From Octopus bimaculoides (taxonomy: Eukaryota), in assembly GCF_001194135.2 (NCBI RefSeq), contig NC_068981.1, positions 25,097,472 through 25,154,806 of the forward strand: a stretch of 57,335 bases of DNA, given 5' to 3'. This document shows, piece by piece, positions 64 through 24,000 of the stretch (its first letter is position 1; the number at the start of each line of letters is the position of its first letter). Under the pieces are notes generated by a model that made no database searches, had not been told where the DNA came from, and saw only the letters and a list, made by a program, of their open reading frames with translations. A program made the translations under genes and the position numbers.

Positions 64-469
64 CTGTATGAGGGAACATATCTCGTGAAATATTGCATGT
101 ACTTTTACTTTTCATATAACATTAATTTATCAGAATAAACAATTGTAAGAAGCATTATTGCTTTGATGATGACATGAATGTATGAGAATGTTAATTTATG
201 ATTACAGCGTTTCAATGGGGGTTAAAGAACGAAGCCAAATAATATTAAAAACAAATGGTAGTTCAGCAGTGTATGACTTATATATATATATATATATAGG
301 TACAGGACGTCATAAAATGTAAACAACATGAAATACGAAAACATGGAATATGAACTTTTATGCTATTTATCTACTCAACATTTTGAGCAATTACGACAAG
401 ATGTGCCTTCAAGGAAACTGTTGCTCCCGCAAAGTAGAATAAAATTTGAGATTTGTGGGATATCAAAGC

Positions 470-1010
470 TTCGTAACAAAAGCAGTTTTGTATTTGTAAT
501 TGAGTAACATTGTCTCTGTTTTTCGTTTTTTGTTTTTTTTCTCTTTGTTGTCGGACACATTTTCTTGCCTTCTCCCAGAATATTTTAAGCTCTTATTTTG
601 GATATTTAAGGCTAGCCAGATTTGGACAGTCTCAAGTGTAATTGACCGAAACTGTAAGAATAATCTGGAAACTTGACGGGGGAGAGAGGGCCACGAATGG
701 CCCGTCCTTGTTTTGTCCTATCCGTCTTTGTATTGTCTATCTGTCTGCATGCTTTATTGTCGTCTGTTGCGTACTTGTTCCGTTTCTTTTTATTTACACG
801 CACACACACACACACACACACACACACACACACACACACACACACACACACACACACACATATGTATATATATATATATATATAAATGATGTGTAATAAC
901 ACTATTCCAGTCATACAAACAATCCAACATACCTTCATCGTTAGCCGCCCCACAGATATCATTATAGTTTCGACACCTGGCCAGTACCATTCAATCCGAT
1001 AACAAGGCGA
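470..1010. repeat. Dispersed repeat (block A) with internal (CA)n(TA)n; probable Penelope-like terminal-repeat relic
   Basis: Homologous to 14860-15170 and 15650-16170 (gctagccagatttg.acagtctca..tgtaa.tg.ccgaaactgtaag...). Family assignment is inferred from a degenerate hammerhead-like motif in the 15752 copy. Confidence 0.6.
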
Positions 1011-1011
1011 A

Positions 1012-1620
1012 CAAAATTACTGAAGTTGATTTCTCAGCAGCCCTAACCACATGTAACAGAACGGTATGCACAGTTACAATATACTTAATGCAGTCATCAG
1101 CAAAAAATATAAAAAGAATACTTTATACAATATTAGTCCAATGATAGGATACAACATAATATTTAATTGTAAGAATGTATCCCCAAATTTCCAGCCCTAC
1201 CTGCTTTATAGACCATATTTTATCCATATCCTTTATCTTTGTGATGTTTCAGTTTTTTTCTGTGGCCATATATGGGGAGAAGCCTTAAAGGGTTTCGAGT
1301 GGAACTTGCGTAGAAGCTTGCTTCCCAACCACATGGTTCTGAGTTCAGTCCCTCTACGTGGCATCTTGGGCAAGTGTCCTCTACTAGAGTCTGCAGCCGA
1401 GCAAAGTTTTGAGAGTGAATTTGGTAGACGGAAACTGAAAGAAGCTCGTCGTATGTATGTATATACTGAGCGAGAATTAAGTCCGGAATCAGCTGAATCA
1501 GCTGATGGGTTTATAAAATTGGCCGGTGTGTTCGGGCGATTACAATCCCTGCCAGTACATACGTATACAATTATGCGCTTTAACTACACAGCATTAGAGC
1601 TTTTTTAACTCATACATTTA
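1012..1620. repeat. Duplicated intronic block B + tRNA/CORE-type SINE head; copies at 4012-4600 and 18107-18590
   Basis: Shared text aaaattact.aa.t.gatttctcag ... aatatttaattgtaagaat.tatccc.aaatttcca, followed by the same SINE head (aagcttgcttcccaaccacatgg...cttgggcaagtgtcctctactag), in all three copies. Confidence 0.85.
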
Positions 1621-1624
1621 GTAA

Positions 1625-19544: not shown

Positions 19545-20660
19545 TATTAATTTACGAAGCTATCATTAATTCTATTATTATCCAATGTAACTATTTTAAG
19601 AATGATAATAAAAGAATCAATGATACAGCTGACAGCAGACCAAAAAGTACCATTAAATAGCCGAGTGATTAAAATTAATCAAAGGACATACTAAGTATGT
19701 CAACCTGCTTGAAATAACAGTCAAAACTCGTTATTAAATCGCCAAAAATAAACTAGGGATAACTACAGAAATGAAACGAAGGCAAATTCGGTTAAGACAA
19801 TTTACTTACATACATTTAAGTATCTTGATTCACGTGAACTAGTTTCTGCATTGACAAAATAAGCCTTAGCTTCTTCAGCACGCATTACCAAGACAAGAGA
19901 TTCCCAACCTATCCTTCTGAAGTCTGTGCCGTTACTGGTTCATTTTGCGCCGAACTCACAGCAGCTTACCAGTGTAAAATAATATCGATATAGATTTACG
20001 AGAAAAATAATTTATTAAAATTAATTTACGAAGTTATCATTAAGTCTATTATTATCCAATGTAACTATTTTAAGAATGATAATAACAGCATCAATGATAC
20101 AGGCGACAGCAGGCCAAAACCTAGCATTAAATAGCAGAGGGATAAAAATAAATCAAAGGACATAATAAGTATGTCTACCTGCTTGAAATAACAGTCAAAA
20201 CTCGTTATTAAATCGCCCAAAATACACTGATAATAACTACAGAACTCAAACGAATAGGATAGGCTGGGAATATCTTATCTTGGTAATGCGTGCTGAAGAA
20301 GCTAAGGCTTATTTTGCCAATGCAGAAACTAGTCCACGTGAATCCAAATATTTAAATGTATGTAAGTAGATTGTCTTAACCGAATTTTCCTTCGTTTGAT
20401 TTCTGTACTTACCACCAGTGTATTTTTGGCGATTTAATAACGCGTTTTGACTGTTATTTCAAGCAGGTAGACCTATTTAGTATGTCCTTTGATTAATTTT
20501 TGTCGAATTTTTCCTGTCTTGGTTTACGTTTGCCACCTTGGAATCCTCTGTTTAGTGGGTTGATCCACTACTCAGGAAGAGACTATTCTAGAGTACGTTC
20601 TGCCTTATCTTCGAAACGTCTAGTTAGAATAGAGACAGCTGATGAATAATCCCAAGTGGC
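19545..20660. repeat. Direct + inverted repeat complex (Penelope pseudo-LTR-like)
   Basis: 19545-19780 is directly repeated at 20020-20250; 19670-19895 is inverted at 20278-20500. A degenerate hammerhead-like motif lies at 20567-20624. Confidence 0.75.
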
Positions 20661-21056
20661 TTTCTGTTTTCCTATCTGTTCGTTCCGTTGTCTGTAGTTC
20701 ATTGTTCTAACAACGTCCTGTACCCTGATATGCATCTATATACACATGTAGATGTAAGTATATACATATATGTGTGTATACATGCATATATATTCTTTGT
20801 ATTATATATATATGTATGTATGTATATATCTATATGCGTGTGTGTGTTCATGTGTCTGCGTGTATGTCCTTACCACTACTTGAGAACCGGTGTTGTGAGT
20901 TTACTTTCTGGTAAATTGGGGCGGGGCAGGGTTTCAAAACCCGATAGAAGAAGTATCAAGGAAGGGAAACGTAATTGACTAAAATTCTTGGAGGTGATGC
21001 ATAAGCATTGTCGCAATCAAATGTCTGAAACAAGTAAAAGAATGGAAGAATATTAC

Positions 21057-21071
21057 TTTAGTTATAATCAT
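21057..21071 (-). pseudogene. IL-17 first micro-exon copy d (MIITK) with weakened donor and altered TATA; function uncertain
   Basis: ATG ATT ATA ACT AAA|GTAATA after a short intronic deletion relative to b and c. The TATA position reads TATATGAAAG. Confidence 0.65.
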
Positions 21072-24000
21072 TAAACAAATTGTTCAATTGGAAATGAAAT
21101 AATTAACGTGGCAATTAGATATTTTACAGTAGAGATCTGAGTTTCATCGTTTCACAGTGTGATATGTTTATTGAGTGGCACTAATTCTCTAAGGTCTACT
21201 TTCATATAGTTACCACGGGTACGGAATACCAGGGTAAATTGCAAAATGTGAAAAAAAAAATGAGTGAAAATTTCTACATATAAGAATAAACCGAAACTAA
21301 AACAAAAGGAAAACTTCTACGTTGACGTATATAAACTAGTAATAATATATCACTCACTCTATCCCTCACTCACTGTCTCCCTCACTAACTCACTGTCTCC
21401 CTCATTAACTCACTCGCTCAATTGTTCAATGTCTTTCTTTCCTCGCATACACGCACGCACACATACACACACACATTTACACACAGAGGTTACTTTGACC
21501 GATTGAGTCTGTGCTTTATCTATTGTACTTCATTAAGATCTACTTTTATAACTTTTATAGTTTCATAGTGTTGTTTTGTATTCTATGCGAATCATTTCTA
21601 AACTGGCGAAGGCTTTAAGCCCCAACGATATCTGAGAGGCTAAGTTTCGATGGGCAATTTCACATCTTAATTGCTATTAACATATGTTTACGATTGTCAT
21701 TATTTTATAACTTTTTCTAAGGTACATAATGTAACTAAGAATCATACACTATAATGAATATAAAAGACTATATAATTTTATAAATATAACAGAGCAGCGT
21801 GTCGGATGAATTGATACTGCGCTGGGCAAAGTACTTAGCGGCATTTCGACGATATTTGCGATCTGAACCCAATTTCCGTCGAGGTCGACTTTCCCCTTCT
21901 ACCGTGATAAAATAAATACTAGTTTAAACCACCCGGTGTCAATATAGTTGCCGTTAGAACAGCAGAAATACTGAGTAAATTGCTCTTTGAATGCGGAAAA
22001 ATTGTCAACAACCAGTCATTGACTCGATCCTATGCCCTCAAAGCCTCCGGCTAAGTGCTTTACCAGCAAGCTAACCTGCTCGCGTCTAATTCAGCAGGTG
22101 AATTTGTCAGTGGGTGGTTTAGCTTACTAGTAAAAACTCAGTTGGAGTCTTTGAGGGATGTGGGTTCGAGTCGCATGGCTGCTCGTTTTCCGCTTGGTAA
22201 CGTTTATTAAGCGTTTATTATTTCTTGTGTTTGAAAAAACATCAACTCATTTGTATCGTACAATATGATGGCTGCAAAGAATGTGTTCAAGTATTTCCAT
22301 CGCCTGATCGAAAGTCCCACAGATAGGAAGGCTAAGGCCAACCATTTCTGTGATAGGTTTTATTTTTTTCCGAGTAATGCCTACGCATGATGATTTTCTA
22401 TAGTGGAGGAAGGATTTGCAAAAATCCAATCCCACTCACTGAACATGGACAACATAAACTCGAAAAGAAGAACTAGTCTGTATCCTTAAACATTGTCAGG
22501 TTTTCTCTCAGAATTTCCCTCTCCTAGAGAGATGTTGTGACAAGAAAAGAGGGGCTTCTCGCTTCCAGTGGGCCAACCGCACACCTGGATACCAACCCAA
22601 ATTTTTCCATCTCCGTGTGCACGCATACGTGCATACATACACATGTACACATATTGTTGGATGGCTCTTGACTGCTCATGAGCTCTTCTGCCCTTTGACA
22701 GGTCTTATTTTTCGTCTTGCAGTGTGTCCAAGAATCACCCTTCTCACCGGCCGTATGTATGTATGTATGTATGTATGTATGTATGTATGTATGTATGTAT
22801 GTATTTATGTATTTATGTATGTGTGCATGTGTGTATGTATGTATGTATGTATGTATGTATCTATCTATCTATCTATCTATCTATCTATCTATCTATCTAT
22901 CTATCTATCTAGTGAGCTAGCTAGCTAGCTATAGGTACATACAATATATAAAGTAAGAAGTGTTATATAATTAACTACATTGTATACTAATAATACTGCA
23001 TTAACTACTTGAAAATTATTTACTGTCGGGATCATTACATTATCGGTCATATTTCCGCCTGTTTATATCTATAAATTCATATTTATTCACAAAGCATTAT
23101 GTCTAAATATCGCAGGGGATTTCCGATGCTACTTAACAGATATAAATGTGTAGTAGATAAATGCTATGATTTTTTATGTCTATTATTGGGACATATGAAC
23201 ACATACTTGGATATAAATATATAAATATATATATATATATATATATATATATATATATACACACACACACACACACACACACACACACACACACATATAT
23301 ATATATATATATATATATANNNNNNNNNNNNNNNNNNNNNNNNNNNNNNNNNNNNNNNNNNNNNNNNNNNNNNNNNNNNNNNNNNNNNNNNNNNNNNNNN
23401 NNNNNNNNNNNNNNNNNNNNNNNNNNNNNNNNNNNNNNNNNNNNNNNNNNNNNNNNNNNNNNNNNNNNNNNNNNNNNNNNNNNNNNNNNNNNNNNNNNNN
23501 NNNNNNNNNNNNNNNNNNNNNNNNNNNNNNNNNNNNNNNNNNNNNNNNNNNNNNNNNNNNNNNNNNNNNNNNNNNNNNNNNNNNNNNATATATATATATA
23601 TATATGTGCGAGTAAAAGTAAATACAAAAAGGTGGGTTTTTTGTATGATTGTGTATAGAAGAATATATTATTTCATATCTTATGTGAAACAACAGCAACA
23701 ACCTTGATGGATCTGGGTTGAGGAGTATAAAAGATTACTTAGATGAATGCAGTATTTCCTGAAGACAACAGAGAAGGTCTCTTTGTGATGTCAACATGTG
23801 AGTAACAGGAAATGTTCAATGACTGTAAAGCATAGCATTTGACACTTTAGCGAGAGTTGAAGTGATATACATGTCCTTAATGAAAGATGACATATGGTTG
23901 AAAGTTTGGTGATGCTTGAGTTATTTCCCTTTCTCTTGTTATGATAAAGACATCGTTATCAAACTCTAATGTTTGAAACGACGGTTCAATATTCTAAGAG

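Follow-up and report, generated by a model that had tools for sequence, protein, structure and literature searches.

Does an octopus cytokine gene own a bank of interchangeable promoters, or have gene duplications come and gone at this locus and left only front ends behind? This question is raised by a stretch of 57,335 nt of Octopus bimaculoides DNA (hereafter the window; CM046601.1 of assembly GCA_001194135.2, where the position equals the window position + 25,097,471), which is part of a tandem IL-17 cluster. The IL-17 cluster of this species was reported to be expanded, and both tandem duplications and two-exon structures are documented for the expanded IL-17 families of invertebrates (PMC8353272). 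On the minus strand of the window, four copies of a first-exon module, here called a to d, precede one IL-17 exon 2, the first 63 nt of which form the left end of the window. Each module consists of a TATA box, a leader of ~135 nt, an ATG exon of five codons and the place of a splice donor. An earlier note on this DNA had proposed that the modules are an array of alternative promoters converging on the one coding exon. The reading that we favour, and to which we give somewhat better than an even chance, is a different one: one two-exon IL-17 gene, composed of module b, possibly module c, and exon 2, which stands amid the relics of nested partial duplications.

All four modules were found where the earlier note had placed them, with ATGs at positions 3488, 5235, 11383 and 21071. 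The distance from TATA box to ATG is 132–137 nt, and pairwise alignments of the modules extend over 380–1670 bp at 81–93% identity. When up to three mismatches were allowed, the 21-mer ATGATTATAACTAAAGTAAGT, which covers micro-exon and donor, yielded four matches compared to 0.02 expected. These are modules b, c and d and exon 1 of paralog A, the sole complete IL-17 gene in the window, whose product matches XP_014769322.2 at 100% identity; module a has diverged too far to be matched. Homology to exon 1 and promoter of paralog A, which had been claimed for each module, is indeed present, but it does not extend beyond the TATA motif and a stretch of ~58 bp surrounding the ATG. Modules b and c show the pattern of the two-exon molluscan IL-17 gene, in which Met and three to four further residues are followed by a phase-0 GTAAGT donor, at ~120–140 nt after the TATA box. 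The same pattern is shared by paralog A, P0003, P0037, P0039, P0040, a 180-aa gene of O. sinensis and a further module at 57148 on the plus strand of the window.

The four modules differ in their state of preservation. The signals TATATAA...GTAAAC and GTAAGT, which are present in all other paralogue first exons examined, are ancestral and among the four modules were kept only in b and c. In module a the end of the micro-exon reads ATGAGTGTAACTAAA/GAACGT (AAA/GAACGT), hence there is no GT at the donor site and the next GT is out of frame (phase 1). Its promoter ends ~230 bp upstream of the ATG, at a duplication junction. We read module a as a dead copy inside the intron between b and exon 2. 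The donor of module d, AAA/GTAATA, is weak, since a 15-bp deletion directly after GTA removed the G at +5 and the T at +6, and an A-to-G change in its TATA box produced TATATG, a sequence that is found in module a as well. GTAAGT occurs in 7 of 7 annotated paralogue first exons examined and also in the plus-strand module at 57148; therefore, the donor state of module d is derived. The inventory consists of one dead (a), one damaged (d) and two structurally intact modules (b and c).

These lesions limit what the modules can contribute to a common product. The acceptor at position 63 reads cag/GTTCCC and is in phase with the donors of b, c and d, and joining any of these three modules to exon 2 is predicted to give MIITK-VPTKVLTFFGYIWIVYSAAIP (MIITK-VPTKVL). 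The expectation that all phase-0 donors fit this acceptor and that the same signal peptide results from every module holds for these three, although with the weak GTAATA in d; module a encodes MSVTK, has no GT and cannot splice in frame. The leaders can be told apart by single-nucleotide polymorphisms: AAAATATCTAATTGCC of b and d corresponds to AAAATCTCTTACCGCT in c, and CAATCAGTATAATG of b and c to CAATTTGTTTAATG in d. Most likely, module b is the working exon 1 for the exon 2 at position 63, and that it is the transcribed module we infer.

For exon 2, the assembly offers 21 codons at the window's end, and the remainder falls into a gap of 1183 undetermined bases (N; 21280–22462 of L003, the O. 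bimaculoides locus that we examined) abutting window position 1. Nothing IL-17-like was found past this gap. The IL-17 identity of the 63-nt stub depends entirely on intact orthologous exons in O. vulgaris (22040–21519 of locus L004) and O. sinensis (28344–27823 of locus L005). Both are uninterrupted over 174 codons, match the Pfam family IL17 (PF06083) with E=1e-10 and show 87% nucleotide identity to window positions 1–291. In these gap-free assemblies they are syntenic, located beside the orthologue of P0037. The 1183-N gap corresponds to 969 bp in O. sinensis, therefore the missing exon fits into it, and the gap-size estimates of the assembly look trustworthy. Of the single coding exon that had been postulated, acceptor and orthology are hence real, while its assembled part is a 63-nt stub at the contig end. 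A second exon 2 was not found in the readable part of positions 64–23230 by tblastn or by blastn at word size 7 with the exons of paralog A and of the O. vulgaris orthologue as queries; the observation that no module has a recognisable exon 2 of its own was correct.

Possibly, each module, or at least module d, has an exon 2 that is hidden in gaps or collapsed repeats, in which case two to four ordinary, complete IL-17 genes would be present at the locus. The assembly is based on short reads and has five gaps within 23 kb, and the known exon 2 is itself located almost completely in a gap, which indicates that such exons assemble badly here. Moreover, behind module d the homology of two intron segments, Y_d and X_d, runs colinear up to the gap at 14293–14645. 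This is the only gap positioned where an exon 2 belonging to d would be expected; however, it holds 353 N compared to ~1 kb required for the remainder of the intron and a 522-bp exon, and in the one case where a gap size could be compared, the estimate proved accurate (1183 N versus 969 bp). On its far side, (TAA)n and AT-rich unrelated DNA follow instead of the 3′ flank of exon 2, and no similarity to exon 2 or to that flank was detected there. The only gap of sufficient size, 18882–19528, separates module d from Y_d, the wrong position for an exon 2. In addition, microsatellites abut four of the five gaps, and the tandem copies of X_d beside the gap at 14293 provide a mundane cause for the break. 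The junction between a and b is free of gaps, and the unit of module c measures only 1.2 kb and has unique flanks. With the one gap too small and the other misplaced, hidden copies of exon 2 are possible but not likely, and we consider an assembly artefact of this kind distinctly improbable. All five gaps lie within intron or intergenic DNA, so that the reading frame is not at stake.

The extent of the duplicated units was addressed by self-comparison of the window. Modules b and c are 92–93% identical, b and d 83% over 1.67 kb, and a and b 85.5%. A divergence of 7–19% between the copies identifies them as paralogues and not haplotigs; the flanks differ as well, and allelic mis-assembly was rejected. 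The units have unequal lengths, 1.2 kb for c, ~1.7–2.7 kb for a and b, and at least 8.6 kb for d, and their boundaries are located at (CA/TA)n, (CATA)n and sequences of a short interspersed element (SINE). All four modules, and the O. sinensis module as well, contain a SINE-like copy that starts ~20 nt behind the donor and was thus inserted before the duplications took place. A classification of the modules as mere copies of a transposable element was rejected, as TATA box, leader and micro-exon lie outside the repeat and are homologous to the first exons of IL-17 paralogues.

The intron of b, with its segments Z_b and Y_b, is cut where the promoter of module a begins, with 4011–4582 matching 1013–1596 close to exon 2 and 3725–4478 matching 17822–18586 behind module d. 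The stretch 3720–5220 had been described as free of gaps, which we could confirm, and the gap-free junction at 3720–3725, where the promoter of a abuts Z of b, leads to the conclusion that a and b resulted from an intragenic tandem duplication. The duplicated stretch was [Y ... exon 1 ... ~230 bp promoter]. Module c is a young copy of b, 93% identical and located ~6 kb upstream of it. It comprises ~0.8 kb of upstream sequence (~0.87 kb above the TATA box), leader, micro-exon and ~200 bp of the intron, with a microsatellite at one edge and AT-rich unrelated DNA at the other. Its flanks are unrelated to those of b, and the downstream flank (10092–11164) is unique.

Module d is part of a far longer unit. 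Over the module and its upstream region, 4903–6547 matches 20758–22349 at 82.7% identity. The upstream region of b (U_b) is then interrupted by a 2.8-kb insertion and resumes beyond it, 9605–9991 matching 22843–23234 at 89%. Downstream, Y_d and then X_d follow in the same order and orientation as in copy a, where Y and X are found 0.4–1.5 kb from exon 2 and X at 0.4–0.9 kb, and the series continues to the gap at 14293–14645. Because of this colinearity, we take module d for the probable 5′ part of an older paralogue that once was complete. Since other IL-17 genes also have fragments resembling X within or close to them, in either orientation, X by itself carries little weight, and the colinearity argument depends on X and Y together. 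The earlier note had assumed that partial duplication multiplied only the regulatory front end of the gene. Partial duplication is what we see for c and for the pair of a and b, but d carries most of an intron, and because every unit includes intron sequence, the restriction to the front end has to be dropped.

A comparison with related species suggests what came before. O. sinensis has one module 2.65 kb upstream of the intact exon 2, in a locus (L005) that covers up to 130 bp upstream of this exon-2-proximal module; the O. vulgaris locus L004 ends inside a mariner/retroelement insertion before exon 1 is reached. The O. sinensis intron contains single copies of segments that are found two or three times in the window. 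The core of Y (L005 28916–29102) matches window positions 1013–1190, 4001–4187 and 18096–18282, and a further single-copy segment matches 4706–4896 and 3121–3199. Judged from this, the ancestral arrangement, with a single module and single intron segments, appears to be visible in O. sinensis. Which module of the window is the orthologue of the O. sinensis module is a matter on which the sites conflict. Of the informative sites of the modules, b shares five with d and another five with c. A 15-bp deletion after the donor places d with O. sinensis, where the very same deletion is present, while by segment Y it is a and b that go with O. sinensis, and the distances between modules are near-star. 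Such mosaic sites point to gene conversion or unequal exchange and to a reticulate history, which blocks the assignment of orthology.

According to the reading with one two-exon gene amid relics, the working gene would have module b as exon 1, with TATA box at 5371, ATG at 5235, MIITK and GTAAGT, and an exon 2 that starts at 63 and runs into the gap left of the window. Module a would be a dead duplicate, trapped in the intron of b after the intragenic tandem duplication. Module c would be a young 1.2-kb copy of the b promoter and exon 1 that landed 6 kb upstream, its activity being putative. Module d would be what is left of the front of an older paralogue, roughly two-thirds of it, with the upstream region, exon 1 and the larger part of intron 1; its exon 2 would have been deleted or be unassembled at 14293–14645, and its TATA box and donor have decayed. 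The underlying processes may have been unequal crossing-over and gene conversion in a gene family evolving by birth and death, with which the location of breakpoints and gaps at microsatellites and SINEs as well as the mosaic sites are in accord. Unequal copy extents, breakpoints in repeats, lesions in a and d, and cores without excess conservation are the hallmarks of birth-and-death evolution that we observed.

Compared copy against copy, the cores of the modules (promoter, leader and exon) are no better conserved than the flanks, a comparison that involves few sites. Between b and d, the proximal promoter is the least conserved part, with 78.6% identity compared to 88–91% in the flanks. For b and c, identity amounts to 97% within the proximal 100 bp and to 93.5% within the adjoining 230 bp; beyond these, the two align in part at 78–82%, and similarity ends ~0.87 kb above the TATA box of c (window 12388). 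No signal of purifying selection was obtained for module cores and exon 2, for which there are too few sites. A protein beginning with MIITKVPTKVL was not found among 5.8 billion sequences in searches with a chimeric query and with a doubled N-terminal peptide. Among the gene models on record, none covers any part of module a, module d or the exon stub. The two annotated loci examined cover the parts of the window on either side of 3947–20170, the interval in which b and c are located; L003 lists no model across the stub, which any coding model that joins b or c to exon 2 would have to overlap.

These results bear directly on the idea that at least two modules, namely b, c and possibly d, are active alternative promoters which join identical five-codon exons to a single exon 2. 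In favour of it, the TATA boxes of b and c are canonical, their leader length is conserved and their phase-0 donors AAA/GTAAGT are perfect; they have no acceptor of their own and one compatible acceptor downstream, and no private exon 2 is readable. The proximal module of O. sinensis lacks an ATG while its exon 2 stays open, and there are two precedents for alternative first exons in IL-17 genes, SpIL17-4a (PMC5457136) and isoforms X1 and X2 in O. sinensis. Against these observations stand the missing protein with the predicted N-terminus and the missing gene model over the stub, the death of a and the degradation of d, the lack of a selection signature in the cores, the assembly of only 21 codons of exon 2 in O. 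bimaculoides, and the intron remnants of d, which argue for its origin as a separate gene. In addition, b and c are nearly identical over the proximal 100 bp and thus offer little regulatory diversity. Overall, we regard this idea as rather unlikely. For the array as proposed we found no positive evidence, given that a cannot splice in frame, that TATA box and donor of d are weakened and that the cores are not under visible selection, but a joint use of b and c is plausible from other IL-17 genes.

Several observations weigh against the reading with one gene amid relics. Module c is intact and 97% like b in the proximal 100 bp, so that this could well be an at least two-promoter gene, and the O. 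sinensis RefSeq annotation has, for the neighbouring gene, a pair of isoforms whose sole difference is the first micro-exon. Modules b, c and d have the same micro-exon throughout (100% identity), although over 15 nt this is not significant and within neutral expectation. Furthermore, the exon-2-proximal module of O. sinensis (L005 31005–30989) has ACG in place of ATG and a weak GTAATA donor, and yet its exon 2 is intact. This combination is what one would see in a gene that is dying or in one that obtains its start codon from a distal module; it hints at the latter and at the possibility that distal modules matter. A working bank of b, c and perhaps d that is conserved in O. sinensis and O. 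vulgaris, with a distal module supplying the start, would take this furthest; we judge it to have a low probability, comparable to that of alternative promoters in the window.

Alternatively, the whole locus would be a decaying pseudogene, with exon 2 expressed in no species and all four modules orphan relics. The gene is annotated in none of O. bimaculoides, O. sinensis and O. vulgaris, where the orthologous exon 2 is not part of a gene model either, and the proximal O. sinensis module combines ACG with a weak donor. The O. vulgaris intron contains nested transposon insertions, and an unrelated mariner copy was noted there at L004 ~23090–24170. Between O. vulgaris and O. sinensis, exon 2 has three non-synonymous changes and one synonymous change at a divergence of 1%, equal to that of the intron, and the 21 codons available for O. 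bimaculoides differ from O. vulgaris by four non-synonymous and no synonymous changes. The pattern between O. vulgaris and O. sinensis is uninformative or hints at relaxed constraint. On the other hand, the 174-codon frame with a full IL17 domain is open in two species of a lineage older than the split of O. bimaculoides, which speaks in favour of a function up to recent times; every first-exon signal is still present in b and c, and the acceptor is conserved. The missing annotation in O. bimaculoides is explained by the gap in which the gene body sits. A pseudogene in all species therefore seems to us quite unlikely.

How does the locus compare to known systems? Among invertebrate IL-17 genes, the sea-urchin SpIL17-1 genes have a two-residue first exon, and SpIL17-4a has two alternative first exons, verified by rapid amplification of cDNA ends (RACE), with distinct start sites and different timing of induction (Buckley et al. 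2017, eLife; PMC5457136). SpIL17-4a resembles the octopus locus in being an invertebrate IL-17 gene of a tandemly expanded family with tiny first exons of 1–5 residues. It differs in that its two first exons were proven by 5′RACE and quantitative PCR and encode different N-termini, while the octopus modules number four with two intact, and the intact ones encode the same residues. A precedent within the same cluster is the O. sinensis orthologue of paralog A, for which isoforms X1 (XP_029649194.1, MITK) and X2 (XP_036360761.1, MLYK) share a common exon 2. The first exon of X2 lies ~205 kb upstream, the model crosses at least five other IL-17 genes, and its coding sequence start is common to another 176-aa IL-17 product; this is either long-range sharing of a first exon or a mapping artefact of a 12-nt exon. 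The similarity consists in a neighbouring gene and a difference confined to the first micro-exon, the dissimilarity in the fact that these are models of an annotation pipeline and no local array of duplicated modules. A paper combining octopus, IL-17 and alternative first exons was not found in the literature searched. Considering the two precedents, the idea of a promoter array is neither absurd nor categorically new.

Outside the IL-17 family, the genes BDNF, CYP19A1 and NR3C1 possess multiple 5′ leader exons, each with its own promoter, that are spliced to one coding exon. If b and c were both used, the octopus gene would likewise make the same protein under different control, although the leaders in those genes have diverged and are tissue-specific and documented, whereas b and c are 97% identical in the proximal 100 bp. 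In UGT1A and the vertebrate clustered protocadherins, the variable exons code for large protein domains that differ from one exon to the next. Common to these clusters and the octopus locus are tandem first exons with a donor and without an acceptor, upstream of a shared acceptor. The analogy is nevertheless a poor one, because the five residues are the same in b, c and d; half of the copies are damaged, a functional donor is not present in every exon, and the exons do not diversify the protein. SpIL17-4a, BDNF and CYP19A1, as genes with alternative leader exons, would be closer analogues. From immune gene families that evolve by birth and death and contain truncated duplicates and orphan exons, such as the molluscan IL-17 arrays (PMC8353272), nothing essential sets the locus apart: the copies are of unequal age (7–19% divergence) and extent, with breakpoints in repeats, lesions and conversion-like sharing. 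A local peculiarity is that several relics keep an apparently usable promoter and donor before the single surviving exon 2.

The features of the window are compiled in Table 1. For the fifth module, on the plus strand, the TATA-to-ATG spacing is 138 nt; its exon 2 must fall past the right end of the window, hence this module probably is the start of the next IL-17 paralogue. In the wider neighbourhood, an IL-17 exon-2 pseudogene fragment with an in-frame stop is located upstream of the P0037/P0039 gene in O. bimaculoides (L003 6343–6570, plus strand), and a fragment in the same position exists in O. vulgaris (L004 4564–5051, plus strand). P0040 is 170 kb away from the O. sinensis counterpart of the array (CM016859.1, ~134,340,538–134,371,021).

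Table 1. Features of the window, in window coordinates
Feature	Position	Strand	Details
IL-17 exon 2, first 63 nt	1–63	−	21 codons, VPTKVLTFFGYIWIVYSAAIP; acceptor AG at 64–65
Segments X_a and Y_a, exon-2-proximal intron	487–1596	−	X_a 487–998, Y_a 998–1596; colinearity reference
Gap	2031–2243		inside lineage-specific insertion with 234-bp inverted arms; no abutting microsatellite
Module a	3474–3719	−	micro-exon 3474–3488 (MSVTK); degenerate TATA TATATGAT at 3605–3620
Segments Z_b and Y_b, intron of b	3725–4582	−	cut at 3725, where module a promoter begins
Old SINE-like repeat copy in module b	4991–5199	−	starts ~20 nt after donor; micro-exon outside repeat
Module b	5215–5371	−	TATA TATATAAAAG 5356–5371; micro-exon 5221–5235 (MIITK); donor AAA/GTAAGT 5215–5220
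U_b, upstream region of b	5460–6814	−	homologous to d upstream 21300–22747; resumes 9605–9991
2.8-kb insertion in U_b	6815–9604		at (CATA)n/(TATG)n microsatellite; mariner-type remnants and gap 6994–7065
Mariner-type transposase remnants	7837–8585	−	Pfam Transposase_1 part 8310–8585, E=3e-8
Gap	6994–7065		(CATA)n/(TA)n
Gap	9992–10091		(TA)n
Module c, whole unit	11164–12388	−	micro-exon 11369–11383 (MIITK, GTAAGT); TATA TATATAAAAG 11505–11520
Gap, 353 N	14293–14645		(TAA)n on low side, then AT-rich unrelated DNA
Intron-derived DNA downstream of d	14653–18586	−	Y_d and Z_d 17822–18586; X_d 14653–16168, two tandem copies
Gap	18882–19528		(TAA)n/(TA)n
Module d and upstream region	20758–23234	−	micro-exon 21057–21071 (MIITK); degenerate TATA TATATGAAAG 21193–21208; upstream 21300–23234
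Paralog A, reference two-exon IL-17 gene	30171–31947	−	XP_014769322.2, 177 aa
Paralog A exon 2	30171–30692	−	
Paralog A exon 1	31936–31947	−	MITK, donor GTAAGT
Paralog A TATA box	32051–32066	−	TATA-to-ATG spacing 119 nt
Fifth first-exon module	57010–57168	+	TATATAAG at 57010; ATGAAGATAACTGCT, donor GTAAGT, at 57148; MKITA
SINE-like repeat copies	17054–17411, 35741–35893, 56228–56558		
SINE-like repeat pieces	1312–1465, 4283–4441, 18390–18549		

The remaining observations concern repeats. The dispersed SINE-like repeat has a length of ~360 bp and occurs in many copies, at 77–93% identity, in every octopus locus fetched. Three inverted-repeat structures in introns and spacers are probably insertions resembling miniature inverted-repeat transposable elements: the repeat 2244–2455/2872–3105, with 234-bp arms of 87.6% identity, which abuts the gap at 2031–2243; a 245-bp inverted pair together with a direct pair at 19546–20500; and a 260-bp perfect-type palindrome at 13916–14175. 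Long open reading frames (ORFs) as typical for retroelements are found at 24905–26820 and 48308–49795 on the plus strand and at 33843–35500 on the minus strand. The ORF 26518–26820 has a weak match to RVT_1 (E=7e-4, under the Pfam cut-off), and no Pfam match was obtained for the ORFs 48308–48727, 49076–49795, 33843–34172 and 35108–35500. The region of 48–50 kb is unusually GC-rich (0.45). A tandem repeat of ~167–256 bp at 44499–45765, with copies that are 88–98% identical, flanks the gap at 44838–45509 and is its likely cause.

If one gene amid relics is the correct reading, the locus is a snapshot of turnover in a cytokine family, in which whole and partial duplication, conversion and decay can be seen side by side. 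In the O. bimaculoides reference, the body of at least one IL-17 gene is concealed by a gap and for this reason unannotated. Should b, c or more modules be used, the design with alternative first micro-exons, proven so far in the sea urchin, would extend to cephalopods, and promoter duplication, besides gene duplication, would tune the IL-17 repertoire. A true promoter bank would imply that the dosage or inducibility of a cytokine can evolve by copying promoters instead of genes. Since the protein repertoire is unchanged under either reading, the impact would be modest.

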